A stretch of 63,561 bases of DNA from Guillardia theta CCMP2712 (GCF_000315625.1 NW_005434657.1:182355-245915); one strand, 5' to 3'; shown: positions 28,656-57,827, numbered from the stretch's first letter. Notes: generated from the letters alone by a model not told the origin. Numbers and translations are program-made.

Positions 28656-33522
<4,867 letters not shown>

Positions 33523-35985: not shown

Positions 35986-36326
35986 GACAACGTCTCCTGT
36001 CTGGCTCGCCGCTTTTGGCAACACGGTTGGCCGTTACAAACAATGACTTCACGACGGTTACAGACCCGGGCCGCCGCCGCCCCTACTGCTCTTGGTGAAC
36101 TGAGCCTACTAGTGGATTGCGCTGCCTTATCCTTTCTCCGGTTGATTGGCTGAGGCGGATTCGTTTTGGGTATCTCTCTCCTTTTTCGCCAGTCCAATTC
36201 TTTTTTATAGTTTGAACTATAAACCTGACAGAAAACAAATGTGTAGTACATTGTGAATCGGGTGAATCCTACCTAGATCCCATAGCTCTAGCTATATAAT
36301 TCTCAACAAATTATCTTGTTGCTGCT

Positions 36327-38366
36327 ATGGCCAAGAGAGTTCGAGAGCTGGAGGAGGAGACGAGTTCAGCTGTAGAGCAAGAGGCTAGGGGGGTACAAAC
36401 AAAAGTCATCCAAACAGACCAAGCCATCACTGCTGCAGAGCAAGAGATCAAGGGAGTAGTGGAAAAGATCAAGGGAGTAGAGGAAAAGATCAATGGAGTC
36501 GAGGACGAGATCAAGGGAGTAGTGGAAAAGATCAATGGAGTCGAGGACGAGATCAAGGGAGTAGACCAAACCATGGCTGCTGTAGAGCAAGAGATCAGCC
36601 AGGCACAAGACCCCAATATGAAGCCTGTCTTGATCATGAAGCAAACGAAGCTTGCAGGTGAAAAGCAACAGCTTGCGGCCAGAGAGAAACGGCTTGGAGT
36701 TAGAGAGAGACAGCTTAGAGTTAGAGAGAGGCAGCTTCGAGATGACAAGGCAAAGCTTCAAGATAAAGAGGCAAAGCTTCGAGAGGAAATGAAGGAAAAG
36801 AAGCAGGCAGCCTTTACCTGGACAGAGTCAGAAGCTCGGCTTGACGGTATGGGGTTTTGCAAGGAGGAGAAATACTTCCGTCTAGATTGCTCTTACTTAT
36901 GGGGCACAAATGTAAACAGCGGAGAGCATCTTCTTCTCTACTGCCGAAAAGCATTCCTGGAGCAGTTCCGTTTCCTGCAAGAGCAAGTGCTAGAGCAAGG
37001 TGCTCTTGGATGGATACAAGGCTCTCCAGGAACAGGGAAGACAACAACAACGCTTTCGTTTTGTATGAAGCTGGATAGGAATGAGTGGAGCTTCAAATGC
37101 ATCAGGCTGAAGGCCAGAAGCAACACCTGTGTCGTGGAGGTGACAGGCAACAAGAGAAGAACATGCTCTGTCGCAAAGGAGTCTGAGGGGAAGCAGATGA
37201 CACTGTTGCTTGAAGGGTTGTCCGACGGCAAAAAGAGCCTCCTGGTGCTCGATGGCTACTTGACACACCAAGAATCTCACACGAGAGCTTTGGTAGCATG
37301 TATAGGATGGCGGGATGCTGACAGGCAGAATCGACGTCTTATAGTGGTGACGTCAATGGCTTCTCGAGGAAAGGTCTACGATGAAGAGGATCGAGAGATG
37401 GGGCTGAAGGTTCACATAGTGCCATCATGGAGGATCGATGAATATCTAGAGGCAGTGCAGTTTGACGAGTTTTACAACAAGGTGGGAGCCACCTTGGAGA
37501 TGAATGTGACAGGAGAGGCTTTGGGTTTCAAGATGACTACAGGGCCGAAATCGAAAGAAGAGCGAGTGAGACATAAGCATTACCTCGCAGGTGGGTCATG
37601 TCGGTACATGTTCGACATGACTGCGGCGGATGTCCTTCGGTCCTTGGATGTTGCGCTTCAAAGTGCTCCAAACTTACAAGATCTTTTTCGGGGCCATGTA
37701 GGCGCTTCCTCGGGGGATATGACGAACAGGCTGATTGCTACTATGGTAACTCAGGAGAAGGTGGTCTGGTTTCCTGTGAGCAAGTACGTAGCCAGCAATC
37801 TTGCGGCGTCCGTGGGTGCGGTTGACATACTGAGAAGAATGCTGACGGCCTTTAGGGGCCCGCGAGCCATGCATGGGTATCTTTTGGAGATGCTCTTTTT
37901 TGAGGAAGTGAGACGAGACCTGAGCATCACTTACCGTGGATCAAGCGAGCCTGAAGTTTTGAAAGCATGCAATCTCGTTGTAATCTTCGATCCGTCACAA
38001 GACACGGACTCTCTTCCCCACACGAGGGTGTGTCTCAAGCCAATCAGTGAATTTCAAGGTGGCTGGGACGCAATCATTGTAGATCAGGATGACAAGGTCG
38101 TGCAGTTTTTTCAGCTGACGGTTGCAAAGGATCACTCTCTCAAGCTCTCGTATTTCTTGACTGCTCTTGAGGCTCTGGGGGTTCCTGCAGGTGGGACATG
38201 GACGATAAGGATCGTTTTTGTCGTCCCGCCGGAGGATGGAATGTTGTTCCGAATAGCCTCTGTCAAGGATGAAGGAGCGCTAGAGCAGTACATGTGGAAG
38301 AAAGGGGAGGAGAGGTCGATGGTCCAGGTGGCGAGTATTGATTTCAATCGAGGGTTCGTTGGTTAG
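36327..38366 (+). CDS. Crinkler/RHS-type (CR) protein copy 1: coiled-coil header + P-loop NTPase + PD-(D/E)xK-like nuclease
   Basis: Intronless 679 aa. Walker A GSPGTGKT, Walker B LLVLDG, RRLIVVTS, AGGSCRYMF, GYLLEMLF, KPISEFQGGWDAIIV..FFQLTVAKDHSLK. Confidence 0.85.
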   Translation: MAKRVRELEEETSSAVEQEARGVQTKVIQTDQAITAAEQEIKGVVEKIKGVEEKINGVEDEIKGVVEKINGVEDEIKGVDQTMAAVEQEISQAQDPNMKPVLIMKQTKLAGEKQQLAAREKRLGVRERQLRVRERQLRDDKAKLQDKEAKLREEMKEKKQAAFTWTESEARLDGMGFCKEEKYFRLDCSYLWGTNVNSGEHLLLYCRKAFLEQFRFLQEQVLEQGALGWIQGSPGTGKTTTTLSFCMKLDRNEWSFKCIRLKARSNTCVVEVTGNKRRTCSVAKESEGKQMTLLLEGLSDGKKSLLVLDGYLTHQESHTRALVACIGWRDADRQNRRLIVVTSMASRGKVYDEEDREMGLKVHIVPSWRIDEYLEAVQFDEFYNKVGATLEMNVTGEALGFKMTTGPKSKEERVRHKHYLAGGSCRYMFDMTAADVLRSLDVALQSAPNLQDLFRGHVGASSGDMTNRLIATMVTQEKVVWFPVSKYVASNLAASVGAVDILRRMLTAFRGPRAMHGYLLEMLFFEEVRRDLSITYRGSSEPEVLKACNLVVIFDPSQDTDSLPHTRVCLKPISEFQGGWDAIIVDQDDKVVQFFQLTVAKDHSLKLSYFLTALEALGVPAGGTWTIRIVFVVPPEDGMLFRIASVKDEGALEQYMWKKGEERSMVQVASIDFNRGFVG

Positions 38367-39107
38367 TGAAGGGTGGCGAATGAAGATGCCAGGAACTGCT
38401 CAGATGGCTGAAGATGTGAAGGAAGTAGACCACTCATAGCATGCGCTGAGGCTGAGCCGTCATGCTCACGTACAAGGGGGGATGTGGATAATTTTACTCA
38501 CAAAACTAATATACAATCCATATTCACTCATGATTCATTTGTTTGGGTAGTACAGGTCATCACTGAAAACCATAACTTGACAGTAAAATGCGATCGCATC
38601 ACCAGCCTCGCCTCTGCTCTTCCTCTGGGTGATGGAGGCAGTGCAGGCGCGGCTGGGGCCTCTGAGTCTTCCGAAGGAGGGGCTGCAGGGGGCTCTGAGT
38701 CTTCCGAAGGAGGGGCTGCAGGGGGAACTGACTCCAAGGCTGACTCGCTGACTCGGGTGGGTAGAGATCTACTGCGTAGCTGCAGTGAGCCCGGGAAGAG
38801 CTTCCTGAGCCGGGGATAACTGCGCCCTGGTCAAGGGAAACTCTGCATGAACCGCCCTATGACTGAAGGCTTGGGGGGGATACAGGGAGGTCCGCCCGCG
38901 AGTTGAAAGAGAGCAGGCGATACGATCTCGCTGCTCAGACGTGCGCTATCAGCTCGCCGAGGTCCATATACTCCACGATCAACCCGGGCCTGATGCACCC
39001 GCAGCAAGGAAGCTGGTAGGGGAGGAAGGACCAGATCCGGCTCGTCCGCTTGACGGAGGGTCAGAGGAGGGTCGAGAATGTCCAGGTCTGCACACAGATC
39101 TTCAGTG

Positions 39108-39460
39108 GGGTCGATCGGCTCCTGAGCATGCATCCCGTACTCTCCCGAGGGGTCGAGCGGCTCCGGAGCATGCATCCCGTGCTCTCAGCACGCCTCCGCT
39201 CCCTCCAGCAGCACTCTGAAGACAAACTGCACCTGCAACGCCGGGTATACGGGGCCGGACGGAGGGAGCTGTACGGCATGCGCGGCAGGCAAGTACAAGA
39301 GCTCGAGCGGGCCAGCAGCCTGCAGCTCGTGCGACGCGATCATTGCTCACATGACTTCTCCCGTGGGGTCGACTAGCTCAGAAAACTGTATCTGCGGTGC
39401 TGGGTTTGAATATGTACGCGCACAGAAGGCAGTATGCGACCTCTCCTCCTCGTCGTCCGT
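39108..39460 (+). pseudogene. Cys-rich GCC2/GCC3 (ephrin-receptor-like) repeat gene fragment, copy 1
   Basis: CIPCSQHASAPSSSTLKTNCTCNAGYTGPDGGSCTACAAGKYKSSSGPAACSSC..TSPVGSTSSENCICGAGF, flanked by stops with no start. Confidence 0.75.
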
Positions 39461-40324
39461 GGTCACCTAAAGCCCGATGAGCTTCTGGGTTCACGTCATG
39501 CATACCGACTTCTCAAGCTCCTACGCCTACTTCCAAGTCGATGTGGAGCTCAGTGCAATCATGTACGTACCCTGGATGATCTCGATTGTGTGCGAAGGAA
39601 GTTTCATGTTGGCCAAACGGTGAAAGATGAACCGGGAAGTGAAATCACTGAATAAATCACCGCTGCTCCTTTTTCAATCACAAATTTTGAAAACTTGACT
39701 AAATTGTTCTTCTTCACTCAACGACTGCAATGTCTGCCAGGTCCTGGTCGTAGATATCTACCAATCCCCGGACTTTCGGAACACCGTTCAAGAAATTTGA
39801 CTCTTCTTTCATCATTTGTCTTATCAAGTTGAAAGGAAGCTGCTTGTCACCTTTGAAATAAAATCACTCAAACAGCAGTCTGTTCATAGCCTTCATCTCG
39901 CTCTCTCTGACTCACAGAGCAGACGCTCTTGTTGGCGGCACTGCACCAGCATTTGCGATCAAGCAATGCTCGCTCCTGACAAGGCACTCGTCTCACTGAG
40001 AACTCAAAGTTAGGCTGAGCAGCCGGTCTTCTACAGGCCCGGGGTCACGGAGGTTCGGTGGCACCGGGCCGAATTGACTGAGTGAAATCGACAGATGAAG
40101 ATCTCTTGGGAATGCTTGCAATGTGAGAACAGTGGTGAGGGGATGCGGCAGGGATGCGAGAGATGCGGGAGAGGGAGAGATGGACGAGGGAGGATGGGAC
40201 CGTGGGAGTGACAGAGGGAGGGAGGCAGACGAGATTCATATGGGGTCATGGTGAAGTATTCAACCATTTCATCTTTGGACCACTATCCAACCATCTATGT
40301 CTCACCAGAACTGATGCTGCCTCA

Positions 40325-41499
40325 ATGTCTGACGTCCTGCATAGCTGGCGCTATCCCCTGCTCCTCTCTTTGTTATCAGCCGCAGCTGCATTTGGTAGGA
40401 TGGGGAGGAATGATAACTTCCACTGAGATGTTACCTAGAAAATTGTTGGAAACTTGCACCATCGCATCGCTTCAGACGTTGCAATGTGCACAAAAGCTTA
40501 CAAGCCGCCATGAAGAGGAACGATGCTCTTTGATTCCCATCTCAACGTTCAGCTCTGGCTTACATCCTGGACAGGGAAACACTGGGAAATACCGTCACGA
40601 TGCAGTCTACCATCAGAGAAGTCAGAGCAAGAGAGATCCTAGACTCAAGTAAGGACTCAGAGTCTCTCCATCCCCAGCACAGGGTCACAAGTTCCTGTCG
40701 GCAGGAGGAAACCCTACGGTCGAAGTTGATCTGCAAACATCCCTAGGGACTTTCAGGTAAGAAACGTTTGCAGCTGACCAGTGGGATATGGCGGGGGTTG
40801 GTAAGGGAACAACCACGGCAGAGCCTCTGTGCCTAGCGGAGCTTCAACGGGGGAGTACGAGGCTGTGGAGTTGAGGGATCAAGATAGAAATCGGTAGAGA
40901 CGATCATGTGCTGGTCGTGCGAGGGACTGATGTGAGCGGTATGAAGGTTTGGAGGGAAAGGTGTTCTGAAGGCTGTGAAGAATGTCAACGAAATCATTCG
41001 ACCGGTAAGGAGTTAAAGAGGACGCGTTGTTGTTGTTGATATATGATGAGATGTGTCATGATCATGATCGTGATCAAGGCGCACCTGCGTTCCTCTTGAC
41101 CATTTTTCATCACAGGCTCTCGTTGGGGAGCAAGGCTCTTGTCAGATTCTCATCGATGACAAACTCATGTGACTCCTCCTCCTCCTCCTCCTCCTCCTCC
41201 TCCTCCTCCTCCTCCTCCTCCTGCTGCTGCTGCTGCTGCTGCTCCTCCTCCTCTTGCTCCTCCTGCTCCTCCTGCTCCTCCTCCTCCTCCTCCTCCTCCT
41301 CCTCCTCCTCCTCCTCCTCCTCTTGTTCTCGATGCTTCTACCACTGTTCCTTGCCCTCAAGCATTTTCTTCTTTCACTTCCCCTTTGTCCCACTATCTTT
41401 GAGAATCTGATTCCATCGGGAAGAGCTTTGGATGGAACGCAACAAAAAGAGACTTTAGGAGCCAATGCAATCTTAGCGGCCTCTCTTGCTGCCTGCAAG
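40325..41499 (+). pseudogene. ENO: Enolase 5' fragment, copy 1 (truncated in an intron)
   Basis: [13 protein letters not shown]|[10 protein letters not shown]|[19 protein letters not shown]|[15 protein letters not shown]|[24 protein letters not shown], then unrelated DNA. Confidence 0.9.
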
Positions 41500-41553
41500 G
41501 TGTGCACCACCCTCAAACTCACCTATCGGATTCCACAACCACAGCACTGTTCG

Positions 41554-43052
41554 GAATCTATTTGCTTTGCTATTTACCAGATGAACTGTCCCTGTTTCCA
41601 GGCAGATCACAATACAAGCGTTTCATGCAGGTTCTTTCAAAAATAATGATGCCACCGAATCAATCAGCAGCCCCGAGTCCCTCTGACACTGACGAGACCG
41701 CGGAAAGGCATGATGATCATAATGGTATGGATGCAGTGCAGACTGCAGTCACTGCCCATCTGCGTTCACTCGGTTTACAACCAGAGGATCTTGGAAGTCA
41801 CTCTATTAGGAAGGGGGCAGCAACTTATTGTTCATCCGGGAGTACTCACTGTCCATCGAGCAGTGCTGTGTCTGAGCGAGCAGGATGGTCCAATGGAGCA
41901 GTTTTCAACACGTATCTACGATATGAAGCAGCAGGTGATGCATTTGTTGGACGCACTATAACAGGGCCTCCCATCGACTCATCAGAGTTTGCGATTCTTC
42001 CGCCGCATTTCAAAGAAGCTGACTCGTCAGGGATGGTTACAAGTGCGATTGAGATGCTGTTCCCAACATTACCAATGTGCATGTATGGAGTTGCGGAGTT
42101 TGCACTCGCATCCGTGTTATACCATGCAGACTTCCTGAGAACGAATTTGCAGAGGAATCGTCCTCTTTGGAAGTCAACCTTGTTTCAGGACGAAGCTATG
42201 CTGAATACTTTGAAATCAAAGGTTGTTTGCTGCATGCCAAAGGAAGCAAGGGGCAGAATGGAAGCGACAGGCATTCCTCCACACGTTCATCAATATGTCC
42301 ACAATGACAAGGTTATTGCGTCCCTAGAAAAAATACAAAGAGAAGTTCTGGAGTTCAAGCAATCTAGCCGGGGCAACCAGGCATTGGCAGAAGGAGTTTC
42401 GGAGAGGCGACAAGTTGGTTTCGTACCAAATGAGTCTGGACAATCAGCAAAGGATTTCTTTCGCCAAGGCTTGCTAGAGAATCGAGATGAGTTCAAAGCT
42501 ATCATACGGGAGGTGATTATGGAGACGGGAGGGGAAGCAAGTGGATCACAGAGAGATGTTCAGCAAAGGGGCCCCCAGGCTTCGGGTCATAGTGTTGTTG
42601 AGTCTGGTCGCAGGAGTGAGGAGCTGGAAACCCCATTGTCGGCATGGAATTTGTGGTTCTGTGGAAACGAGAAAAAACAAATCCCCCCTTTGAGAAATGT
42701 TTCTGCGGGGGAGTTGAAGCCTGGACAAAGCAATACAAAGCGACGTTCAGACGTGAAGTTTCTCGTGAAATGTTTTGAGCAGCATATGAACAACGTGCTA
42801 GCTGACAAGGATACAGACGAGAGGGATACAGAACTAAGGAGGTTTGAAGAGTTGAAAAGAGCAACCGGAGTCAGGCGCATGCTCAGGGAATCGCAGGAGA
42901 TTTTTGTCAAGTATGAGTCGTCTTTCTACAGTTGGATCAATGTAGACTCGGGCTACACTTTCCGCAGAGGGCAATTGAAATGGAATACATTCGTGAAGAA
43001 GTTAAGGAAAAAATTCAAGAAGAACTCAGGCTCATCTGCATCAAGTCGTTGA
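41554..43052 (+). mobile_element. 5'-truncated Crypton-type tyrosine-recombinase element, copy 1 (block B extends to ~43431)
   Basis: EDLGSHSIRKGAATYCSSGST.CPS..AV..RAGWS.GAV.NTYLRYEAAGD.FVGRT.TG.P....FAILPPHF (H-x-x-R, W, Y of YR; CryptonS-like); later ATGIPPHV and AWNLWFCGN..IPPLR. Confidence 0.88.
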
Positions 43053-43571
43053 GAATAGTCAGGATGATGTTTTCTTTGAACATGGAATAAAAGTACTTGA
43101 ATACGCTGAACGATTGTCGATATTCAGCCATGATCATGGAAGTCAGTGCATTGTTTCCAGAATAACTTTTTGAATTGCTTCGATCAAACGTCCCATGCCA
43201 TGATCAGATGACTACAAGGTTCAGAACTAGCCTACGTCGTAGAGGTTTTCTTCCCTCAAGCCAGGTTCAATGCTGTTTGTTACTCTCATATTGCTTAATT
43301 AGAGAATACAAGGACAGACAATCGATGAAGGACATGATTTCCCTATGTTATGCATTATTTGGTTAGTCAGGAACAAACAGCATACTGAGAACAAGTGCGA
43401 TCTATCTTCCTTCCATCGCCACCGGCATGAATTTTCGCTCAGTCCAATTTATAGTTCAAACTATAAACCTGACAGAAAACAAATGTTTAGTACATTGAAT
43501 CCTACCTAGATCCCATAGCTCGAGCTATATAATTCTCAACAAATTATCTTGTTGCTGCCACTGCCGCTACT

Positions 43572-45677
43572 ATGGCCAAGAGAGTTCGAGAGCTGGAGGA
43601 GGAGGAGACGAGTTCAGCTGTAGAGCAAGAGGCTAGGGGGGTACAAACAAAAGTCATCCAAACAGACCAAGCCATCACTGCTGCAGAGCAAGAGATCAAG
43701 GGAGTAGAGGAAAAGATCAAGGGAGTAGAGGAAAAGATCAAGGGAGTCGAGGACGAGATCAAGGGAGTAGTGGAAAAGATCAATGGAGTCGAGGACGAGA
43801 TCAAGGGAGTAGTGGACGAGATCAAGGGAGTAGACCAAACCATGGCTGCTGTAGAGCAAGAGATCAGCCAGGCACAAGACCCCAATATGAAGCCTGTCTT
43901 GATCATGAAGCAAACGAAGCTTGAAGGTGAAAAGCAACAGCTTGCGGCCAGAGAGAAACGGCTTCGAGGTGACAAGAGACAGCTTGCGGCCAGAGAGAAA
44001 CGACTTGGAGTTAGAGAGAGACAGCTTAGAGTTAAAGAGAGACAGCTTCGAGATGAAGAGGCAAGGCTTCAAGATAAAGAGGCAAAGCTTCGAGAGGAAA
44101 TGAAGGAAAAGAAGCAGGCAGCCTTTACCTGGACAGAGTCAGAAGCTCGGCTTGACGGTATGGGGTTTTGCAAGGAGGAGAAATACTTCCGTCTAGATTG
44201 CTCTTACTTATGGGGCACAAATGTAAACAGCGGAGAGCATCTTCTTCTCTACTGCCGAAAAGCATTCCTGGAGCAGTTCCGTTTCCTGCAAGAGCAAGTG
44301 CTAGAGCATGGTGCTCTTGGATGGATACAAGGCTCTCCAGGAACAGGGAAGACAACAACAACGCTTTCGTTTTGTATGAAGCTGGATAGGAATGAGTGGA
44401 GCTTCAAATGCATCAGGCTGAAGGCCAGAAGCAACACCTGTGTCGTGGAGGTGACAGGCAACAAGAGAAGAACATGCTCTGTCGCAAAGGAGTCTGAGGG
44501 GAAGCAGATGACACTGTTGCTTGAAGGGTTGTCAGACGGCAAAAAGAGCCTCCTGGTGCTCGATGGCTACTTGACACACCAAGAATCTCACACGAGAGCT
44601 TTGGTAGCATGTATAGGATGGCGGGATGCTGACAGGCAGAATCGACGTCTTGTGGTGGTGACGTCAATGGCTTCTCGAGGAAAGGTCTACGATGAAGAGG
44701 ATCGAGAGATGAGGCTGAAGGTTCACATAGTGCCATCATGGAGGATCGATGAATATCTAGAGGCAGTGCAGTTTGACGAGTTTTACAACAAGGTGGGAGC
44801 CACCTTGGAGATGAATGTGACAGGAGAGGCTTTGGGTTTCAAGATGACTACAGGGCCGAGATCGAAAGAAGAGCGAGTGAGACATAAGCACTACCTCGCA
44901 GGTGGGTCATGTCGGTACATGTTCGACATGACTGCGGCGGATGTCCTTCGGTCCTTGGATCTTGCGCTTCAAAGTGCTCCAAACTTACAAGATCTTTTTC
45001 GGGGCCATGTAGGCGCTTCCTCGGGGGATATGACGAACAGGCTGATTGCTACTATGGTAACTCAGGAGAAGGTGGTCTGGTTTCCTGTGAGCAAGTACGT
45101 AGCCAGCAATCTTGCGGCGTCCGTGGGTGCGGTTGACATACTGAGAAGAATGCTGACGGCCTTTAGGGGCCCGCGAGCCATGCATGGGTATCTTTTGGAG
45201 ATGCTCTTTTTCGAGGAAGTGAGAAGAGACCTGAGCATCACTTACCGTGGATCAAGCGAGCCTGAAGTTTTGAAAGCATGCAATCTCGTTGTAATCTTCG
45301 ATCCGTCACAAGACACGGACTCTCTTCCCCACACGAGGGTGTGTCTCAAGCCAATCAGTGAATTTCAAGGTGGCTGGGACGCAATCATTGTAGATCAGGA
45401 TGACAAGGTCGTGCAGTTTTTTCAGCTGACGGTTGCAAAGGATCACTCTCTCAAGCTCTCGTATTTCTTGACTGCTCTTGAGGCTCTGGGGGTTCCTGCA
45501 GGTGGGACATGGACGATAAGGATCGTTTTTGTCGTCCTGCCGGAGGATGGAATGTTGTTCCGAATAGCCTCTGTCAAGGATGAAGGAGCGCTAGAGCAGT
45601 ACATGTGGAAGAAAGGGGAGGAGAGGTCGATGGTCCAGGTGGCGAGTATTGATTTCAATCGAGGGTTCGTTGGTTAG
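43572..45677 (+). CDS. Crinkler/RHS-type protein copy 2 (701 aa)
   Basis: Same motifs as copy 1, with more heptads in the header. Confidence 0.85.
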   Translation: MAKRVRELEEEETSSAVEQEARGVQTKVIQTDQAITAAEQEIKGVEEKIKGVEEKIKGVEDEIKGVVEKINGVEDEIKGVVDEIKGVDQTMAAVEQEISQAQDPNMKPVLIMKQTKLEGEKQQLAAREKRLRGDKRQLAAREKRLGVRERQLRVKERQLRDEEARLQDKEAKLREEMKEKKQAAFTWTESEARLDGMGFCKEEKYFRLDCSYLWGTNVNSGEHLLLYCRKAFLEQFRFLQEQVLEHGALGWIQGSPGTGKTTTTLSFCMKLDRNEWSFKCIRLKARSNTCVVEVTGNKRRTCSVAKESEGKQMTLLLEGLSDGKKSLLVLDGYLTHQESHTRALVACIGWRDADRQNRRLVVVTSMASRGKVYDEEDREMRLKVHIVPSWRIDEYLEAVQFDEFYNKVGATLEMNVTGEALGFKMTTGPRSKEERVRHKHYLAGGSCRYMFDMTAADVLRSLDLALQSAPNLQDLFRGHVGASSGDMTNRLIATMVTQEKVVWFPVSKYVASNLAASVGAVDILRRMLTAFRGPRAMHGYLLEMLFFEEVRRDLSITYRGSSEPEVLKACNLVVIFDPSQDTDSLPHTRVCLKPISEFQGGWDAIIVDQDDKVVQFFQLTVAKDHSLKLSYFLTALEALGVPAGGTWTIRIVFVVLPEDGMLFRIASVKDEGALEQYMWKKGEERSMVQVASIDFNRGFVG

Positions 45678-46416: not shown

Positions 46417-46769
46417 GGGTCGATCGGCTCCTGAGCATGCATCCCGTACTCTCCCGAGGGGTCGAGCGGCTCCGGAGCATGCATCCCGTGCTCTCAGCAC
46501 GCCTCCGCTCCCTCCAGCAGCACTCTGAAGACAAACTGCACCTGCAACGCCGGGTATACGGGGCCGGACGGAGGGAGCTGTACGGCATGCGCGGCAGGCA
46601 AGTACAAGAGCTCGAGCGGGCCAGCAGCCTGCAGCTCGTGCGACGCGATCATTGCTCACATGACTTCTCCCGTGGGGTCGACTAGCTCAGAAAACTGTAT
46701 CTGCGGTGCTGGGTTTGAATATGTACGCGCACAGAAGGCAGTATGCGACCTCTCCTCCTCGTCGTCCGT
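46417..46769 (+). pseudogene. GCC2/GCC3 Cys-rich fragment, copy 2
   Basis: Matches 39108-39460. Confidence 0.75.
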
Positions 46770-47633: not shown

Positions 47634-48751
47634 ATGTCTGACGTCCTGCATAGCTGGCGATATCCCCTGCTCCTCTCTTTGTTATCAGCCGCAGCTGCAT
47701 TTGGTAGGATGGGGAGGAATGATAACTTCCACTGAGATGTTACCTAGAAAATTGTTGGAAACTTGCACCATCGCATCGCTTCAGACGTTGCAATGTGCAC
47801 AAAAGCTTACAAGCCGCCATGAAGAGGAACGATGCTCTTTGATTCCCATCTCAACGTTCAGCTCTGGCTTACATCCTGGACAGGGAAACACTGGGAAATA
47901 CCGTCACGATGCAGTCTACCATCAGAGAAGTCAGAGCAAGAGAGATCCTAGACTCAAGTAAGGACTCAGAGTCTCTCCATCCCCAGCACAGGGTCACAAG
48001 TTCCTGTCGGCAGGAGGAAACCCTACGGTCGAAGTTGATCTGCAAACATCCCTAGGGACTTTCAGGTAAGAAACGTTTGCAGCTGACCTGTGGGATATGG
48101 CGGGGGGTGGTAAGGGAACAACCACGGCAGAGCCTCTGTGCCTAGCGGAGCTTCAACGGGGGAGTACGAGGCTGTGGAGTTGAGGGATCAAGATAGAAAT
48201 CGGTAGAGACGATCAGGTGCTGGTCGTGCGAGGGACTGATGTGAGCGGTATGAAGGTTTGGAGGGAAAGGTGTTCTGAAGGCTGTGAAGAATGTCAACGA
48301 AATCATTCGACCTGTAAGGAGTTAAAGAGGATGCGTTGTTGTTGTTGATATATGATGAGATGTGTCATGATCATGATCGTGATCGAGGCGCAACTGCGTT
48401 CCTCTTGACCATTTTTCATCACAGGCTCTCGTTGGGGAACAATGCTCTTGTCAGATTCTCATCGATAACAAACTCATGTGACTCCTCCTCCTCCTCCTCC
48501 TCCTCCTCCTCCTCCTCCTCCTCCTCCTCCTCCTGCTCCTCGTCCTCGTCCTCCTCCTCCTCCTCCTCCTCCTCTTGTTCTCGATGCTTCTACCACTGTT
48601 CCTTGCCCTCAAGCATTTTCTTCTTTCACTTCCCCTTTCTCCCACTATCTTTGAGAATCTGATTCCATCGGGAAGAGCTTTGGATGGAACGCAACAAAAA
48701 GAGACTTTAGGAGCCAATGCAATCTTAGCGGCCTCTCTTGCTGCCTGCAAG
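47634..48751 (+). pseudogene. ENO: Enolase 5' fragment, copy 2
   Basis: As copy 1. Confidence 0.9.
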
Positions 48752-48805
48752 GTGTGCACCACCCTCAAACTCACCTATCGGATTCCACAACCACAGCACT
48801 GTTCG

Positions 48806-50658
48806 GAATCTATTTGCTTTGCTATTTACCAGATGAACTGTCCCTGTTTCCAGGCAGATCACAATACAAGCGTTTCATGCAGGTTCTTTCAAAAATAATG
48901 ATGCCACCGAATCAATCAGCAGCCCCGAGTCCCTCTGACACTGACGAGACCGCGGAAAGGCATGATGATCATAATGGTATGGATGCAGTGCAGACTGCAG
49001 TCACTGCCCATCTGCGTTCACTCGGTTTACAACCAGAGGATCTTGGAAGTCACTCTATTAGGAAGGGGGCAGCAACTTATTGTTCATCCGGGAGTACTCA
49101 CTGTCCATCGAGCAGTGCTGTGTCTGAGCGAGCAGGATGGTCCAATGGAGCAGTTTTCAACACGTATCTACGATATGAAGCAGCAGGTGATGCATTTGTT
49201 GGACGCACTATAACAGGGCCTCCCATCGACTCATCAGAGTTTGCGATTCTTCCGCCGCATTTCAAAGAAGCTGACTCGTCAGGGATGGTTACAAGTGCGA
49301 TTGAGATGCTGTTCCCAACATTACCAATGTGCATGTATGGAGTTGCGGAGTTTGCACTCGCATCCGTGTTATACCATGCAGACTTCCTGAGAACGAATTT
49401 GCAGAGGAATCGTCCTCTTTGGAAGTCAACCTTGTTTCAGGACGAAGCTATGCTGAATACTTTGAAATCAAAGGTTGTTTGCTGCATGCCAAAGGAAGCA
49501 AGGGGCAGAATGGAAGCGACAGGCATTCCTCCACACGTTCATCAATATGTCCACCATGACAAGGTTATTGCGTCCCTAGAAAAAATACAAAGAGAAGTTC
49601 TGGAGTTCAAGCAATCTAGCCGGGGCAACCAGGCATTGGCAGAAGGAGTTTCGGAGAGGCGACAAGTTGGTTTCGTACCAAATGAGTCTGGACAATCAGC
49701 AAAGGATTTCTTTCGCCAAGGCTTGCTAGAGAATCGAGATGAGTTCAAAGCTATCATACGGGAGGTGATTATGGAGACGGGAGGGGAAGCAAGTGGATCA
49801 CAGAGAGATGTTCAGCAAAGGGGCCCCCAGGCTTCAGGTCATAGTGTTGTTGAGACTGGTCGCAGGAGTGAGGAGCGCACCGTAATATCGCAGGAGTGAG
49901 GAGCGCACCGTAATAATGCTCCCACCGTCACAAATTGGAAGGAAGCCATGAGAGTTCTTCATTATCTCAATCAGACAAAAACCATGGGAATAACTTTTAA
50001 ACGGAATGGAAGTCTAAACTCACCATACCCTGGACTAATTGCATATAGCGATAGCGACTTTGGAGGAGACTCCTCAGATCGTCGCTCAACCATTGGCATC
50101 CTTCTGCAATACAATGGCGCTCCGGCAGACACTGTTGGAGGAAACGAGAGCAGAGACCCGGGTGGTTCTATTGATGAAGCAGCTGGGGAAAGCGCGTCGG
50201 CTCTGGAAGAAGTACTTTTGACAGAAGAGCTGGAAACCCCATTGTCGGCATGGAATTTGTGGTTCTGTGGAAACGAGAAAAAACAAATCCCCCCTTTGAG
50301 AAATGTTTCTGCAGGGGAGTTGAAGCCTGGACAAAGCAATACAAAGCGACGTTCAGACGTGAAGTTTCTCGTGAAATGTTTTGAGCAGCATATGAACAAC
50401 GTGCTAGCTGACAAGGATACAGACGAGAGGGATACAGAACTAAGGAGGTTTGAAGAGTTGAAAAGAGGAACCGGAGTCAGGCGCATGCTCAGGGAATCGC
50501 AGGAGATTTTTGTCAAGTATGAGTCGTCTTTCTACAGTTGGATCAATGTAGACTCGGGCTACAGTTTCCGCAGAGGGCAATTGAAATGGAATACATTCGT
50601 GAAGAAGTTAAGGAAAAAATTCAAGAAGAACTCAGGCTCATCTGCATCAAGTCGTTGA
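48806..50658 (+). mobile_element. Crypton-type YR fragment, copy 2, interrupted by a 354-bp insertion (block B' extends to ~51037)
   Basis: Matches copy 1 except for the insertion after ..GRRSEE. Confidence 0.88.
49877..50230 (+). mobile_element. Ty1/copia RT-RNase H junction fragment inserted in Crypton copy 2
   Basis: NAPTVTNWKEAMRVLHYLNQTKTMGITF...LIAYSDSDFGGDSSDRRSTIGILLQYNGAP; no LTRs. Confidence 0.85.
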
Positions 50659-51177
50659 GAATAGTCAGGATGATGTTTTCTTTGAACATGGAATAAAAGT
50701 ACTTGAATACGCTGAACGATTGTCGATATTCAGCCATGATCATGGAAGTCAGTGCATTGTTTCCAGAATAACTTTTTGAATTGCTTCGATCAAACGTCCC
50801 ATGCCATGATCAGATGACTACAAGGTTCAGAACTAGCCTACGTCGTAGAGGTTTTCTTCCCTCAAGCCAGGTTCAATGCTGTTTGTTACTCTCATATTGC
50901 TTAATTAGAGAATACAAGGACAGACAATCGATGAAGGACATGATTTCCCTATGTTATGCATTATTTGGTTAGTCAGGAACAAACAGCATACTGAGAACAA
51001 GTGCGATCTATCTTCCTTCCATCGCCACCGGCATGAATTTTCGCTCAGTCCAATTTATAGTTCAAACTATAAACCTGACAGAAAACAAATGTTTAGTACA
51101 TTGAATCCTACCTAGATCCCATAGCTCGAGCTATATAATTCTCAACAAATTATCTTGTTGCTGCCACTGCCGCTACT

Positions 51178-53262
51178 ATGGCCAAGAGAGTTCGAGAGCT
51201 GGAGGAGGAGGAGACGAGTTCAGCTGTAGAGCAAGAGGCTAGGGGGGTACAAACAAAAGTCATCCAAACAGACCAAGTCATCACTGCTGCAGAGCAAGAG
51301 ATCAAGGGAGTAGTGGACGAGATCAAGGGAGTAGTGGACGAGATCAAGGGAGTCGAGGACGAGATCAATGGAGTAGTGGAAAAGATCAATGGAGTCGAGG
51401 ACGAGATCAAGGGAGTAGTGGACGAGATCAAGGGAGTAGACCAAACCATGGCTGCTGTAGAGCAAGAGATCAGCCAGGCACAAGACCCCAATATGAAGCC
51501 TGTCTTGATCATGAAGCAAACGAAGCTTGAAGGTGAAAAGCAACAGCTTGCGGCCAGAGAGAAACGGCTTCGAGGTGACAAGAGACAGCTTGGAGTTAGA
51601 GAGAGACAGCTTAGAGTTAAAGAGAGACAGCTTCGAGATGACAAGGCAAAGCTTCGAGATAAAGAGGCAAAGCTTCGAGAGGAAATGAAGGAAAAGAAGC
51701 AGGCAGCCTTTACCTGGACAGAGTCAGAAGCTCGGCTTGACGGTATGGGGTTTTGCAAGGAGGAGAAATACTTCCGTCTAGATTGCTCTTACTTATGGGG
51801 CACAAATGTAAACAGCGGAGAGCATCTTCTTCTCTACTGCCGAAAAGCATTCCTGGAGCAGTTCCGTTTCCTGCAAGAGCAAGTGCTAGAGCATGGTGCT
51901 CTTGGATGGATACAAGGCTCTCCAGGAACAGGGAAGACAACAACAACGCTTTCGTTTTGTATGAAGCTGGATAGGAATGAGTGGAGCTTCAAATGCATCA
52001 GGCTGAAGGCCAGAAGCAACACTTGTGTCGTGGAGGTGACAGGCAACAAGAGAAGAACATGCTCATTCGCAAAGGAGTCTGAGGGGAAACAGATGACACT
52101 GTTGCTTGAAGGGTTGTCAGACGGCAAAAGGAGCCTCGTGGTACTCGATGGCTACTTGACACACCAAGAATCTCACATGAGAGCTTTGGTAGCTTGTATC
52201 AGATGGCGGGATGCTGACAGGCAGAATCGACGTCTTGTGGTGGTGACGTCAATGGCTTCTCGAGGAAAGGTCTACGATGAAGAGGATCGAGAGTTGAGGC
52301 TGAAGGAGCACATAGTCCCATCATGGAGGATCGATGAATATCTAGAGGCAGTGCAGTTTGACGAGTTTTACAATAAGGTGGCTCCCACCTTGGAGATGAA
52401 TGCGACAGGAGAGGCTTTGGGTTTCAAGATGACTACACGGCCGAGATCGAAAGAAGAGCGAGTGAGACATAAGCACTACCTCGCAGGTGGGTCATGTCGG
52501 TACATGTTCGACATGACTGCGGCGGAGGTCCTTCGGTCCTTGGATGTTGCGCTTCTATGTGCTCCAAACTTACAAGATCTTTTTCGGGGCCATGTAGGCG
52601 CTTCCTCGGGGGATATGACGAACAGGCTGATTGCTACTATGGTCACTCAGGAGAAGGTGGTCAGGTTTCCTGTGAGCAAGTACGTAGCCAGCAATCTTGC
52701 GGCGTCCGCGGGTGCGGTTGACATGCTGAGAAGAATGTTGACGGCCTTTAGAGGCCTGCGAGCCATGCATGGGTATCTTTTGGAGATGCTCTTTTTCGAG
52801 GAAGTGAGACGAGACCTGAGCATAACTTACCGTGGATCGAGTGAGCCTGAAGTTTTGAAAGCATGCAATCTCGTTGTAATCTTCGATCCGTCACAAGACA
52901 CGGACTCTCTTCCCCACACGAGGGTGTGTCTCAAGCCTATCAGTGAATTTCAAGGTGGCTGGGACGCAATCATTGTAGATCAGGATGACAAGGTCGTGCA
53001 GTTTTTTCAGCTGACGGTTGCGAAGGATCACTCTCTCAAGCTCTCGTATTTCTTGACTGCTCTTAAGGCTCTGGGGATTCCTGCAGGTGAGATATGGACG
53101 ATAAGGATCGTTTTTGTCGTCCCGCCGGAGGATGGAATGTTGTTCCGAATAGCCTCTGTCAAGGATGAAGGAGCGCTAGAGCAGTACATGTGGAAGAAAG
53201 GGGAGGAGCGGTCGATGGTCCAGGTGGCGAGTATTGATTTCAATCGAGGGTTCGTTGGTTAG
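51178..53262 (+). CDS. Crinkler/RHS-type protein copy 3 (694 aa, most divergent)
   Basis: Same motifs; many private substitutions. Confidence 0.85.
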   Translation: MAKRVRELEEEETSSAVEQEARGVQTKVIQTDQVITAAEQEIKGVVDEIKGVVDEIKGVEDEINGVVEKINGVEDEIKGVVDEIKGVDQTMAAVEQEISQAQDPNMKPVLIMKQTKLEGEKQQLAAREKRLRGDKRQLGVRERQLRVKERQLRDDKAKLRDKEAKLREEMKEKKQAAFTWTESEARLDGMGFCKEEKYFRLDCSYLWGTNVNSGEHLLLYCRKAFLEQFRFLQEQVLEHGALGWIQGSPGTGKTTTTLSFCMKLDRNEWSFKCIRLKARSNTCVVEVTGNKRRTCSFAKESEGKQMTLLLEGLSDGKRSLVVLDGYLTHQESHMRALVACIRWRDADRQNRRLVVVTSMASRGKVYDEEDRELRLKEHIVPSWRIDEYLEAVQFDEFYNKVAPTLEMNATGEALGFKMTTRPRSKEERVRHKHYLAGGSCRYMFDMTAAEVLRSLDVALLCAPNLQDLFRGHVGASSGDMTNRLIATMVTQEKVVRFPVSKYVASNLAASAGAVDMLRRMLTAFRGLRAMHGYLLEMLFFEEVRRDLSITYRGSSEPEVLKACNLVVIFDPSQDTDSLPHTRVCLKPISEFQGGWDAIIVDQDDKVVQFFQLTVAKDHSLKLSYFLTALKALGIPAGEIWTIRIVFVVPPEDGMLFRIASVKDEGALEQYMWKKGEERSMVQVASIDFNRGFVG

Positions 53263-53719
53263 TGAAGGGTGGCGAATGAAGATGCCAGGAACTGCTCAGA
53301 TGGCTGAAGATGTGAAGGAAGTAGACCACTCATAGCATGCGCTGAGGCTGAGCCGTCATGCTCACGTACAAGGGGGGATGTGGATAATTTTACTCACAAA
53401 ACTAGTATACAATCCAAATTCACCTATGATTCATATGTTCTGAGTAGTACAGGCCATCACTGAAAACCATAACTTGATAGTAAAATGCGATCGCATCACC
53501 AGCCTCGCCTCTGCTCTTCCTCTGGGTCATGAGGCAGTGCAGGCGCCGCTGGGGGCTCTGAGTCTTCCGAAGCAGGGGCTGCAGGGGGAACTGACTCCAA
53601 GGCTGACTCGCTGACTCGGGTGGGTAGAGATCTACTGCGTAGCTGCCGTGAGCCCGGGAAGAGCTTCCTGAGCCGGGGATAAGTGCGCCCTGGTCAAGGG
53701 AAACTCTGCATGAACCGCC

Positions 53720-54430
53720 CTATGACTGAAGGCTTGGGGGGGATACAGGGTGGCCCGCCCGCGAGTTGAAAGAGAGCAGGCGATACGATCTCGCTGCTCG
53801 GACGTGCGCTATCAGCTCGCCGAGGTCAATATACTCCACGATCAACCCGGGCCTGATGCACCCGCAGGAAGGAAGCTGGTAGGGGAGGAAGGACCAGATC
53901 CGGCTCGTCCGCGTGACGGAGGGTACCATCCAGCCGAGAGAACAGAGGAGGGGGCGAGAATGTCCAGGTCTGCACACAGGTAGATGAAGAAAGCAAACTC
54001 CAGTGGGGACAAAACTGAAGGGCTGGCCGAGCTCAGGTTGACGTCCGAGCCTCCGTCAGACAAGGGCAAGGTTTTTCGTCCTGAAGAACACTCTGATCGA
54101 AAGCGGCATATGCATCACTCACCATCTCAGGATCGCTGCCCCTTAAGAAGTACTGCAAATTGGGAGGTGAGTAGCACGGATAAGGTGTTTGCGTGCTTGT
54201 GGAGGTCATCGTCAAGAGCCGCGAGCTTTTCCTCAAGCCAGTTTCTGATGAAGCCCCTATAGCCCATAAGTATGCCTCCTTCTACGACCCCCTCCAGCTC
54301 GACTGAAGCTCCGCAAGTGCGCAAACTCTTTCAATCCACAAAAATGCACTCAGCGACTCCTGCACAGAAGTGCCGCGGGCTGCGCCGTTCAGTCACGGCA
54401 CTGTGGCAGGTCCATTCATCACTGATCACA
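53720..54430 (-). pseudogene. Degraded coding fragment of unknown family; its 3' part is also present in copies 1 and 2
   Basis: Coding-like pieces GYRGFIRNWLEEKLAALDDDLHKH, EFAFFIYLCADLDIL, PGLIVEYIDLGELIAHV, broken by stops and frameshifts. Confidence 0.35.
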
Positions 54431-54475
54431 TGCCGCTGGCCTAATCCTGCGCGTCAGTTCGACCCAGTCGAAGTC

Positions 54476-54688
54476 GTGAGTTAAGAACAGTACAAGCTGT
54501 GAGTTAAGAACAGTACAAGCTGTGAGTTAAGAACAGTACAAGCTGTGAGTTAAGAACAGTACAAGCTGTGAGTTAAGAACAGTACAAGCTGTGAGTTAAG
54601 AACAGTACAAGCTGTGAGTTAAGAACAGTACAAGCTGTGAGTTAAGAACAGTACAAGCTGTGAGTTAAGAACAGTACAAGCTGTGAGT
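54476..54688. repeat. Perfect 23-bp tandem array GTGAGTTAAGAACAGTACAAGCT x9 + partial
   Basis: Direct count; no spacers and no mismatches. Confidence 0.97.
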
Positions 54689-55190
54689 CACGGAACCCGC
54701 CTGAACTCTATTATGAACTCAAGGCGGGTCTGATATCGATCGTAGATTATGAACTCCCTGTACTTCTTCAGGAAGGCTCCAGGATGGGTCGCCTTGGTGA
54801 CTCCGATGACCGAGTTATACCCTGACGGCGCCAGTCTCTGTTGATTCATCGCGTTTAGAGCTTCATAAGGCCTCCCCAGCATAGCTCGGATCAGGAACAT
54901 GTAGCAAAGGCCAGTTGAGTTGGGCGTGCAGTACTCGTCACTCTTGCTAGAGTTCTCCGCCAGATAGATCCCCGCTCCAAACAAGCCATTCATATCGAAG
55001 CGTCGCTCGTCAAGTCCCTCAGCACTCACGATAGAGTCTATGTTGTTCTCCTTGGTGTCATGAAACAGCAAGTGGGTTCCCCCTGATAACCCTTGTGTGT
55101 CAGGTGCTTGTTGTCTCGCCCTTGCCCCATGTATTTCGGTTTACATGTCGACGACGTGAGCTCTTGCATCCTGTCTCTCTGATACAGGTG
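54688..55190 (-). pseudogene. PARP/tankyrase-like ADP-ribosyltransferase catalytic domain, probably disrupted
   Basis: LLFHDT...GLDER..MNGLFGAGIYLAENSSKSDEYC..MFLIRAMLG..APSGYNSVIG..YREFIIYDRYQ (H-Y-E triad). The upstream piece is in another frame. Confidence 0.85.
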
Positions 55191-55799
55191 TGACATCTCG
55201 CTATCTCGCTCTCCTCGCCGTTGTTCTCTCTCCTTGCGTTCCCGTTCCTCCTTCTCCTTGCTTTCCTTCTCACTTTTCCTCTCGCTTTTTCGACCTTTGA
55301 AATGACACAGCTCGGGAGTTTCAATCAAAGTCTGAGAGACAAGGTGCCCTTGGGGGGGATGAAAGGAGCTCCGAAAGACGTGGGGCGAAAGCATGCTGCT
55401 TGAAGAAAGCCTGAGGCAAATCAGAGCAGACGCTCTTGTTGGCGGCCGTCTGACAAGCTTCTCCTTGTCTTCTATAGGCCCGGGGTCACGGAGGTTTGGT
55501 GGCACCGGGCCGGATTCACTGAGTTAAAATGGTTAGCTAATAAAGATTTCACTGGACTGCCCGACAATGCTGGTCATGTGAGAACCGTGGTGAGGGGATG
55601 CGGCAAGGATGCGGGAGAGACAGAGAGGGGATCAATGCAGCAAGGGCTAGAGAGGGAGGGACGAGGGAGGATGGGACCGTGGGAGAGACAAAGGGAGGGA
55701 GGCAGACGAGATTCATACGGGATCATGGTGAAGTTTTCAACCAGTTCATCTTTGGATCACTATCCAACCATCTATATCTCACCAGAACTTATGTTGCCT

Positions 55800-57827
55800 C
55801 AGTGTCTGACGTCCTGCATAGCTGGCGCTATCCCCTGCTGCTCTCTTTGTTATCAGCCGCAGCTGCATTTGGTAGGATGGGGAGGAATGATAACTTCCAC
55901 TGAGATGTTACCTAGAAAATTGTTGGAACCTTGCACCATGGCATCGCTTCAGACGTTGCAATGTGCACAAAAGCTTACAAGCCGCCATGAAGAGGAACGA
56001 TGCTCTTTGATTCCCATCTCAACGTTCAGCTCTGGCTTACAACCTGGACAGGGGAACACTGGGAAACACCGTCACGATGCAGTCTACCATCAGAGAAGTC
56101 AGAGCAAGAGAGATCCTAGACTCAAGTAAGGATTCAGAGTCTCTGCATGCCCAGCACGGGTCACAAGTTCCTGTCGGCAGGAGGAAACCCTACGGTCGAA
56201 GTTGATCTGCAAACATCCCTAGGGACTTTCAGGTAAGAAAAGTTTGCAGCTGACCTGTGGAATATGGCGGGGGATGGTAAGGGAACACCCACGGCAGAGC
56301 CTCAGTGCCCAGCGGAGCTTCAACGGGGGAGTACGAGGCTGTGGAGTTGAGGGATCAAGATAGAAATCGGTAGAGACTATCAGGTGCTGGTCGTGCGAGG
56401 GACTGATGTGAGGGGTATGAAGGTTTGGAGGGAAAGGTGTTCTGAAGGCTGTGAAGAATGTCAACGAAATCATTCGGCCGGTAAGGAGTCAAAGAGGATG
56501 CGTTGATGTTGTTGATATATGATGAGATGTGTCATGCGTTGATGTTGTTGATATATGATGAGATGTGTCATGCGTTGTTGTTGTTGATATATGATGAGAT
56601 GTGTCATGATCATGATCGTGATCAAGGCGCACCTGCGTTCCTCTTGACCATTTTTCATCACAGGCTCTCGTTGGGGAACAATGCTCTTGTCAGATTCTCA
56701 TCGATAACAAACTCATGTGACTCCTCCTCCTCCTCCTCCTTCTCCTCCTCCTTCTCCTCCTCCTCCTCCTCCTCCTCCTCCTCCTCCTCCTCCTCCTCCT
56801 CCTCCTCTTTTTCTAGATGCTGCTACCTTGCATTTTCTTCTTTCACTTCCCCTTTCTCCCACTATCTTTGAGAATCTGATTCCATCGGGAAGAGCTTTGG
56901 ATGGAACGCAACAAAAAGAGACTTTAGGAGCCAATGCAATCTTAGCGGCCTCTCTTGCTGCCTGCAAGGTGTACATGGCCCCCTCCCTCAAACTCACCTA
57001 TCGGATTCCACAACCACAGCACTGTTCGATGACACTCTCATTCTCTAGATTCTTCACCACTCTACCTCCCTCTCCTCCCTCTCCTCCCTCTCCTCCCTCT
57101 CCTCCCTCTCCTTCCTCTCCTCCTTCCTCTCCTCTTCCTTCACCACCACCACATGCCCCCTCTACTTTTCTTCCTCACCCTTTCCCCTTCTCCACTAATT
57201 CGTGTTCTTCCTCCCCTTGATCGATCTCTCCCCTGTCGCTCATCACATGGAGAGCAGGCTGGAGCTGCTGCACATCAACTGGAATATTTCGAGTCAGCCC
57301 CTCACAATCAGCAGCTCACCCGCTGAAGTGCTGTATCAGGTACATCAGCCAGCTCGCAGGAACGAAGGAAATGGTTGAAAGTGTTCTACTTGCTCCTCCT
57401 CTCACTCCCTTTCAGTCTCTCCCCATTCCATGGATGAACGTGATAAATGGCGGGCAGCACGCTGGAAATCGTCTGCAGATGCAGGTGGGACTTGTTTTAC
57501 CTTGCAGAGTTTGCGCTTCCTCCTCATAGTCAGCTAGGAGTTTATGGTTGCCCCTGTTGGAGCTGAGAATTTCCAAGAGGCGATGAGGTGAATTCTTGCC
57601 TTGTCTTCTCCGTCTGTTCGAAAAGTTTCATCACGAAATCTGTCATGCAGGATGGGCTCGGAGGTCTACCACACGCTGAGGAAGATCATCATCGACAAAC
57701 ATGGGCCAGCCGCGGCTTCGATCGGTGAGATCCTGTGAGAGATGGGACAGTAGTTGAAGAAGTTGTTTGTTCACCATTCTTGACTTGATGAGCAGGTGAC
57801 GAGGGGGGTTTTGCTCCTGATGTCGAG
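55800..57827 (+). CDS. ENO: Enolase, continuing copy (3' end lost in the assembly gap at 58221)
   Basis: Same 5' exons plus [34 protein letters not shown]|[17 protein letters not shown]|[10 protein letters not shown]|GDEGGFAP. Confidence 0.92.
56498..56605. repeat. 36-bp tandem repeat x3 in an enolase intron (single unit in copies 1 and 2)
   Basis: ATGCGTTGATGTTGTTGATATATGATGAGATGTGTC. Confidence 0.9.

Follow-up and report, generated by a model that had tools for sequence, protein, structure and literature searches.

Crinkler/RHS-type (CR) effectors of oomycetes are built, as far as the work of Zhang et al. (2016) is rendered in PMC5289972, on an NTPase–(HTH)–REase C-terminal module, that is, a nucleoside triphosphatase (NTPase), a bracketed helix-turn-helix (HTH) and a restriction endonuclease (REase)-type domain. 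CryptonS transposons of oomycetes and diatoms carry a single tyrosine recombinase (YR) gene and are devoid of reverse transcriptase, terminal inverted repeats (TIRs) and long terminal repeats (LTRs) (Kojima and Jurka 2011, PMC3212892); no study of Crypton transposition had been reported as of 2011 (PMC3212892). A 2026 paper further describes teleost Crinkler-like AACRNL genes that have spread with adjacent hAT and mariner transposons (PMC12957317). The present analysis concerns a tandem array of CR genes, with Crypton fragments at its internal junctions, in a 63,561-nt stretch of Guillardia theta CCMP2712 DNA (hereafter the window; C17:182355-245915 of the 87.1-Mb, 669-contig assembly), to which coordinates refer unless a contig is named. 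Guillardia theta is a free-living cryptophyte alga, and Crinkler-type NTPase-nuclease genes are widespread outside pathogens. The array is probably a real tandem segmental duplication in the nuclear genome, produced by one illegitimate duplication and one unequal exchange, and the Crypton family to which the fragments belong occurs, across the genome, directly upstream of CR genes in a non-random manner.

The original prediction had described three copies of one block joined head-to-tail. Self-BLAST and a repeat finder confirm this observation and delimit three units over 36204-57028, in which the following features are found.

36204-43447: unit 1, 7244 bp
36204-36292, + strand: solo Crypton 3' tail before CR copy 1, about 85 bp, interrupted by a 10-bp insertion
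36327-38366, + strand: CR copy 1, intact intronless open reading frame (ORF), 679 aa
38682-39097: dispersed repeat of about 415 bp, with copies about 75% identical on many contigs
40811-41505, + strand: 5' exons of an enolase pseudogene, matching positions 28-57 and 93-119 of the Enolase_N hidden Markov model (HMM)
41550/41551: junction 1, enolase intron to internal Crypton site, with a 1-nt (G) microhomology
41551-43521, + strand: Crypton fragment Y1, the 3' 1.97 kb of a 3.5-kb element, reaching the natural 3' terminus of the family
43448-51053: unit 2, 7606 bp
43445-43521, + strand: Crypton tail before CR copy 2, identical to the copy-3 tail at 51051-51127
43572-45677, + strand: CR copy 2, intact ORF, 701 aa
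48803-51127, + strand: Crypton fragment Y2, with the truncation point of Y1 and a 228-bp extra segment at 49894-50121
51054-57028: unit 3, partial
51178-53262, + strand: CR copy 3, intact ORF, 694 aa, of an older lineage (synonymous divergence, dS, of 0.04-0.05 to copies 1 and 2)
53924-55467: segment specific to unit 3, standing in place of 39061-40026 of units 1 and 2
57028-57511, + strand: right end of the array, where unit 3 continues unbroken past the breakpoint into the remaining enolase pseudogene

Identity is 97.1% between units 1 and 2, 96.3% between units 2 and 3 and 93.5% between units 1 and 3, and the pairwise values between repeated stretches of the array span 93.5-98.9%. There is no run of N within the array, the nearest gaps lying outside it at 58221-58320 and 60911-61034. 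The CR ORFs differ in length because the number of 21-bp (heptad) repeats varies between copies. Besides the CR ORF, every duplicated part of the unit is non-coding or fragmentary, in agreement with the earlier statement that the CR gene alone is intact in every copy. The enolase 5' half attributed to each unit has to be reduced: Enolase_N pieces are indeed present, but as two short matches only. The start of Enolase_C (HMM positions 3-34) is met only past unit 3, at 57416-57511, and what looks like a complete enolase gene is present on another contig (C22:136857-138286).

The junctions between units are the most informative part of the array. Junction 2 (48802/48803) is identical to junction 1 to the base: the enolase intron ends in ...CACTGTTCG and is followed by Crypton sequence GAATCTATTTGC..., where full-length Cryptons have ...GGCATTAG preceding GAATCT at the breakpoint site. 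Unit 3, in turn, runs straight through the junction point into the rest of the enolase pseudogene. Two identical junctions, with a single nucleotide of microhomology at an internal Crypton site, thus point to one non-homologous join that was copied later. The presence of the same Crypton YR fragment at both internal junctions, as first described, is borne out by the common truncation point, and both pieces appear to record a single illegitimate join, not two recombinase events.

The block-to-Crypton junction is also transcribed. Run X2 (RNA) reveals GT..AG introns at 41004-41114 and 41500-41601, so that the enolase pseudogene exons are transcribed and spliced, the last enolase donor being joined to an acceptor within the Crypton piece; in run X5, one contig bridges the block-to-Crypton junction. 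An in-frame enolase–YR fusion protein was considered and rejected, the splice being out of frame and the enolase frame stopping about 15 codons further on. The YR frame has no upstream start in the chimeric RNA. The Crypton fragment would thus be expressed only as an out-of-frame chimeric enolase–Crypton RNA, in which no basis for a functional product is seen.

The history of the units was read from sites informative in a three-way comparison. Throughout the unit body, units 1 and 2 group as sisters, whereas the Crypton piece, tail and 5' untranslated region (UTR) of unit 2 are identical to those of unit 3. The same holds for the CR gene, since the body of copy 2 is copy-1-like while its tail and 5' UTR are copy-3-like. 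The switch in affinity maps to 36289-36481, at the 5' end of the CR gene. The middle unit, unit-3-like at its 5' end and unit-1-like afterwards, is therefore a hybrid as predicted for unequal exchange in a two-unit array. Y1 and Y2 are 98.9% identical, and their divergence of 1.1%, to which two indels are added, equals that of units 1 and 2. Unit 3 split off earlier, at a divergence of about 5%. A derived replacement at 39061 is common to units 1 and 2. Unit 3 retains the older state there, because the start of its specific segment (the first 190 bp of 53924-55467) still matches the paralogue on C209 (L007). With L007 and with a second dispersed paralogue, located at C17:170-180 kb (L004), the array shares a segment of about 3.1 kb (36013-39097) that the dispersed repeat at 38682-39097 closes; the left flank of the copy-1 solo tail (36013-36174) is common to both paralogues.

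A three-step scheme would account for these features. In the first step, a 3.5-kb CryptonS-like transposon would have been situated upstream of the CR gene, its 3' end some 55 bp from the start codon, a placement seen at other CR loci. In the second step, one illegitimate duplication would have connected the enolase intron to an internal Crypton site, leaving the order CR, dead Crypton piece, CR. In the third step, the two CR copies would have undergone unequal exchange at their 5' ends, by which the middle unit was gained. Steps 2 and 3 rest on sequence, and step 1 is inferred. The same dead fragment is found at both junctions because the unequal exchange duplicated a unit that already held it, and the Crypton fragment would serve the array only as a source of homology. 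Of the two duplicating events, the first needs no recombinase, since the block-to-Crypton junction is non-terminal and has a microhomology of 1 nt, and for the second a plain homologous exchange would suffice.

Several points weigh against this preferred scheme. The exchange interval starts 1-2 bp from the Crypton 3' terminus (36290) and takes up only about the first 5% of the homologous block, as expected if a recombinase had acted at this terminus. It spans both this terminus and 190 bp of plain homology, and a recombinase-mediated exchange at the terminus is thus possible for the second event, since the interval starts exactly there. Gene conversion blurs the history of the copies, with 18 sites grouping unit 3 with L004 against 26 grouping L004 with L007. 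Moreover, CR copy 1 and L004 have a solo tail only, so that a full Crypton upstream of copy 1 would require a later deletion, or else a Crypton piece brought in from another locus. The copy number comes from a single Sanger assembly, and variants unique to unit 2 are absent from the contigs of an independent DNA run, contigs being prone to drop rare variants. Another route, in which a Crypton piece recombined into a resident solo tail at a point within the tail, was rejected: the tails of units 2 and 3 continue without a break from the Crypton body, and their variants recur in the tail of a further Crypton copy, on C91.

The Crypton family itself could be defined from the genome. Y1 and Y2 match, at 95-98%, the 3' part of a 3.5-kb repeat family whose full-length members on C50, C2 and C502 delimit a 3.54-kb element. 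Its only gene is a YR gene made of a short upstream exon and a 706-aa ORF; no reverse transcriptase, DDE transposase, TIRs or LTRs are found. The catalytic set R108, K135, H247, R250, W276 and Y285 is conserved in an alignment of 26 YR homologues, five of which match Phage_int_SAM_4, a phage-integrase N-terminal SAM-like domain. The 516-aa and 706-aa YR proteins themselves give no match in Pfam, and a profile of the 26 homologues compared with PDB sequences retrieves nothing at E<=1. Among named proteins, the best relatives come from oomycetes and a diatom. The 516-aa ORF of Y1 (41502-43052) retains HSIRKG..GW..NTYLRY; the reading frame of Y2 is split into two ORFs (48754-49899 and 49948-50658). 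Both fragments lack R108 and K135 because they start near residue 165. The junction ORF had been described as a Crypton-type YR fragment without its N-terminal catalytic arginine, a description that stands and now extends to the lysine. An intact Crypton, whose absence from the genome would have counted against the first proposal, is apparently present on C50, the C2 copy being frameshifted.

Independent copies of the element terminate at identical bases, and both of their junctions contain a short AC|TTA(T) core. The natural 3' terminus reads ...CATAGCTCTAC; in the array, about 55 bp separate it from the start codon of the CR gene downstream. The circle junction predicted from these ends has inverted arms of 10-12 bp (GAATCCTACC / GGGAGGATTC). 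Short inverted arms of this kind are typical of YR sites. An 85-bp miniature Crypton was encountered on C269 (L039, C269:40916-43946, at about 1450-1535), in which the 5' 45 bp are joined to the 3' 40 bp; it keeps both inverted arms, is followed by a satellite array of about 30-bp repeats and is apparently transcribed, since one X2 RNA contig has a loose end that matches it. Directly 3' of the full-length Crypton on C50 lies an AT-rich block (L001, C50:476000-485999, at 113-3065, minus strand) encoding a Prim-Pol ORF (PF09250, E 4e-11) and another ORF, of 629 aa, whose C-terminus is YR-like; the block looks like a virus-like, possibly polinton-like, insert. An 87-bp piece of this block recurs directly 5' of the C502 Crypton and ends in CATAATCTCTAC, like the Crypton 3' end.

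Taken together, the features of the element fit a CryptonS-like YR transposon. Like CryptonS, it has a short terminal core (AC|TTAT) instead of target-site duplications, and the Guillardia YR has a conserved C-terminal region without GCR1_C. It differs in its cryptophyte host and in its termini, which are not the TATGG typical of CryptonS (PMC3212892). It also differs in leaving solo tails of about 75 bp, in its 85-bp mini-derivative and in its positional link to one host gene family.

This positional link was revealed by genome searches with the terminal 80-96 bp tail and with the 110-bp 5' end of the Crypton. The tail has 18-19 matches in the genome. In CR genes of at least four unrelated subfamilies, the terminal segment of about 75-80 bp sits 20-360 bp upstream of the gene, in the same orientation. 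Beyond the array, the loci concerned are the following.

C17:176531-176610: solo tail at L004, before an inverted CR paralogue 6 kb upstream of the window
C174:16036-16194: two tandem solo tails adjoining a CR gene 72% identical
C2:1202239-1202314: tail closing a full-length Crypton, after which comes a CR-like ORF, truncated and 37% identical
C372:8016-8078: solo tail adjoining a paralogue of the C2 gene
C45:101510-101577: solo tail adjoining a CR gene 30% identical

At least four independent CR lineages are thus represented among about thirteen tail-bearing loci, and the tails are 85-92% alike as against 30-72% for the adjoining CR proteins. The chance probability of such adjacency ranges from 4e-13 to 6e-9, for 65-300 CR genes and an upstream target of 400-1000 bp. 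The association is real, and the position of the Crypton family directly before CR genes is non-random throughout the genome. The co-occurrence beyond chance of CR genes and Crypton sequence that the original prediction called for has therefore been found, as have further CR loci near a Crypton, on C17, C174, C2, C372 and C45, the lack of which had been named as grounds for abandoning it. Matches to the 110-bp 5' end show no such link to CR genes genome-wide, and no shared motif was found in the DNA flanking the CR-associated tails. On C174, the public gene model GUITHDRAFT_120269 (L029/L038, C174:14536-17694) starts inside the tail, so that its first residues are translated from tail sequence.

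The likely cause would be preferential integration, or retention, upstream of CR genes, often followed by collapse to a solo tail of about 75 bp. Solo tails tend to begin with TTTATAG, which resembles the Crypton 5' terminus CTTATAGT, and this suggests collapse through recombination between these short repeats. A young Crypton lies on C502 (L002), a 4.7-kb contig that is 99.4% identical both to the CR region of C147 (over 1.2 kb) and to the C50 Crypton, and joins the two head-to-head. On C147 (L003), a divergent YR fragment lies 2.3 kb upstream of the CR gene. C502 would be either a haplotig with a polymorphic insertion of this young Crypton or a recent duplicate. In the small samples available from other organisms, two Crypton homologue loci in P. 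nicotianae and Nitzschia have no CR gene nearby, and two Phytophthora Crinkler (CRN) homologue loci have no YR within 8 kb. A search of full-text literature, in the parts of the texts it returned, met no report of a physical Crypton–Crinkler link. A stronger proposal is that this young CryptonS-like family is functionally tied to CR genes, either integrating upstream of them or providing a terminus to which CR genes home, with the site of about 75 bp acting both as 5' region and as recombinase substrate; this is unlikely, if conceivable.

It is against this background that amplification of the array by a recombinase has to be weighed. The tails of about 75-80 bp that flank every unit would be the sites of a YR acting in trans, and units would be added by unequal sister-chromatid exchange or by excision and re-integration of circles. 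Directly oriented tails do precede all three CR copies, an apparently intact Crypton exists on C50, and the Crypton terminus marks the start of the interval of exchange (36289-36481). Inverted arms of 10-12 bp are present at the predicted circle junction, both of them retained in the C269 mini-element, and the tail is specifically linked to CR genes genome-wide. However, block and Crypton meet at an internal Crypton site with a 1-nt microhomology, only the other boundary of the unit coinciding with the Crypton 3' terminus, and the tail of unit 2 is wholly unit-3-like, which excludes an exchange at the left (TTATAG) boundary of the tail. Read contigs, which cannot show rare forms, contain neither a circle back-joint nor a tail–tail junction. 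The genome searches reported neither YR nor tail matches for the contigs that carry other CR clusters (C84, C193, C19, C28, C132, C97 and C56). Ordinary homologous exchange explains the same data, and the recombinase account is judged clearly improbable, although the place to which the exchange maps and the genome-wide tie of the Crypton end to CR genes leave it some weight. The YR-associated amplification system first proposed is thus upheld in part only: other CR loci do adjoin Crypton sequence and an apparently intact Crypton could act in trans, but the illegitimate founding join, the hybrid middle unit and the other clusters devoid of reported Crypton matches speak against it. In Phytophthora infestans, the closest Crinkler homologue lies in an 8.2-kb tandem duplicate with 98.45% identity (L043, DS028151.1:1624015-1641883), and no tyrosine recombinase is found near this duplicate.

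An assembly artefact is quite improbable. In that case there would be two true units only, unit 2 with Y2 being the other haplotype of unit 1 with Y1, threaded in tandem. The divergence between units 1 and 2 (about 1-1.5%; 1.1% and two indels for Y1 and Y2) is in the range of the 0.6% difference, haplotig-like or due to insertion polymorphism, that separates C502 from C147 and C50. The letters unique to unit 2 (T at 45538, G at 45791) are also absent from the X1, X2 and X5 contigs, in which rare variants are dropped. Nevertheless, the array is gap-free, and a false join would need reads pairing the Crypton tail with a unit-1-type body over less than 193 bp of identity. The summed contig depth of run X1 (DNA) is about 221 at three-unit positions versus 147-163 at positions found in units 1 and 2 only. 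Three equal copies would give a ratio of 1.5, and alleles one of 2.0; the ratio found, about 1.4-1.5, fits the former, and is weak evidence in that contig depth is not copy number.

A composite mobile element, in which Crypton and CR would form a two-gene cargo transposon and the array an integrated concatemer of its circle, would agree with the CR-like ORF found directly after the full-length Crypton on C2 and with the second gene known in some CryptonS elements (PMC3212892), but is very improbable, since two Crypton copies on C50 and those on C91 and C252 share the 3' terminus although their flanks are unrelated and hold no CR, the tail-adjoining CRs belong to subfamilies only 30-72% identical for which no common downstream boundary was found, and each unit contains local enolase exons that run on past unit 3, so that the right end of the unit is a local breakpoint and not an element terminus. 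Tandem segmental duplication followed by unequal exchange thus remains the preferred reading.

The CR gene that the array multiplies is a member of a family for which the Guillardia genome yields at least 72 matches, many of them in tandem clusters (C84, C193, C19, C13, C28, C132 and C97); GUITHDRAFT_67655, with 94% identity, is among the best protein matches of the 679-aa protein. Copy 1 comprises a coiled-coil N-terminus (21-bp repeats at 36415-36735), a P-loop NTPase with a Walker A motif GSPGTGKT and a Walker B motif LLVLDG, and a C-terminal REase-like domain. The clearest named relatives beyond Guillardia and Hanusia are Phytophthora proteins annotated as Crinkler with PF20147 (P0132-P0134), whose matches have E values of 1e-54 to 1e-58 and cover 69% of the query at 32-34% identity. 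In the alignment of algal and Phytophthora proteins, Walker A (G-x-P-G-x-G-K; G232, P234, G235, G237 and K238) and the Walker B residue D309 are invariant, and conservation extends to the C-terminal residues E521, D581, Q596, T598 and H603. In Pfam, the NTPase region has AAA_11/AAA_16 matches below threshold only. At the N-terminus, the headers of the Phytophthora proteins and the coiled coils of the algal ones do not align, and the 679-aa protein has no match to the PF20147 header in Pfam even at E<=10. The protein thus appears homologous to the NTPase–REase module of CR effectors, without the header that marks a translocated Crinkler.

Structural details of the C-terminus were sought in an AlphaFold model of residues 432-679, with a mean predicted local distance difference test (pLDDT) score of 81. 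Foldseek returned no match to this model at E<=0.001, with probabilities of at most 0.66. In an exhaustive fold search (VIA-align), all beta-rich matches are REase-fold nucleases, with Z scores of 4.6-5.7, headed by R.BspD6I (5.7), N.BspD6I (5.6), McrC (5.2) and Bse634I (5.1) and including Card1, SdaI, FokI and HindIII. These modest Z scores weigh against the REase assignment, and so does the canonical (D/E)xK motif, whose lysine is not evident. The modelled fold supports an REase-type C-terminus, but does not prove a working active site. Together with the Phytophthora CRN matches, it agrees with the identity first given to the gene, an NTPase with an REase-like module. Between close CR copies, dN/dS, the ratio of replacement to synonymous divergence, is 0.45-0.87, and the deficit of replacement changes is significant (P 0.005 and 0.001). 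The genes would thus be weakly constrained, 'headless' members of the Crinkler type. RNA-derived contigs cover the CR ORF, end near 45800 and bear letters of more than one copy; the scorable RNA variant letters within copy 2 (44853-45624) are of the copy-3/L004 type.

Two other observations were made in the window. Near the upstream side of the array, at 30900-32400 on the minus strand, DEAD-box helicase exons are found with a SPRY-like segment (DDX1-like). At 59895-61731, 192-bp tandem repeats (64-aa units), broken by the assembly gap at 60911-61034, lie in a 750-aa coiled-coil ORF (59982-62234, minus strand).

The Guillardia CR protein thus resembles oomycete CRNs over about 70% of its length, with Walker A and B motifs and C-terminal residues common to P. 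nicotianae and P. infestans. The family is large, fast-evolving and often tandem, and Phytophthora also has tandem CRN copies. The differences lie in the lack of a PF20147 (ubiquitin-like, Ubl/LFLAK) header and of an evident secretion signal, in the heptad-repeat coiled-coil N-terminus, in the free-living host and in a nuclease that is predicted only. Like the teleost AACRNL genes, this is a header-degenerate Crinkler-like family of a free-living eukaryote with copies adjoining DNA transposons, a situation interpreted in teleosts as selfish propagation. In contrast, the AACRNL effector is an ADP-ribosyltransferase and not an NTPase–REase, the teleost transposons are of the DDE and not of the YR type, and the local amplification in Guillardia is explained without transposition. 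The closest parallel is tandem segmental duplication with unequal crossing-over, with which the array shares one non-homologous founding junction, a hybrid unit and stepwise divergence (1% and 5%). It departs from a plain tandem duplication in that the exchange point abuts a putative recombinase site and that the transposon end is found at unrelated family members too.

As far as the mechanism is concerned, the local array would be ordinary, which tempers the amplification claim originally made. The oriented link between tail and CR gene, the apparently intact recombinase and the transcribed 5' regions make Crypton target choice testable. Whether transposon ends shape the expansion or the expression of conflict genes can thus be addressed in a culturable alga. 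A functional tie between Crypton and CR genes, if true, would amount to a eukaryotic integron-like amplification of conflict genes.

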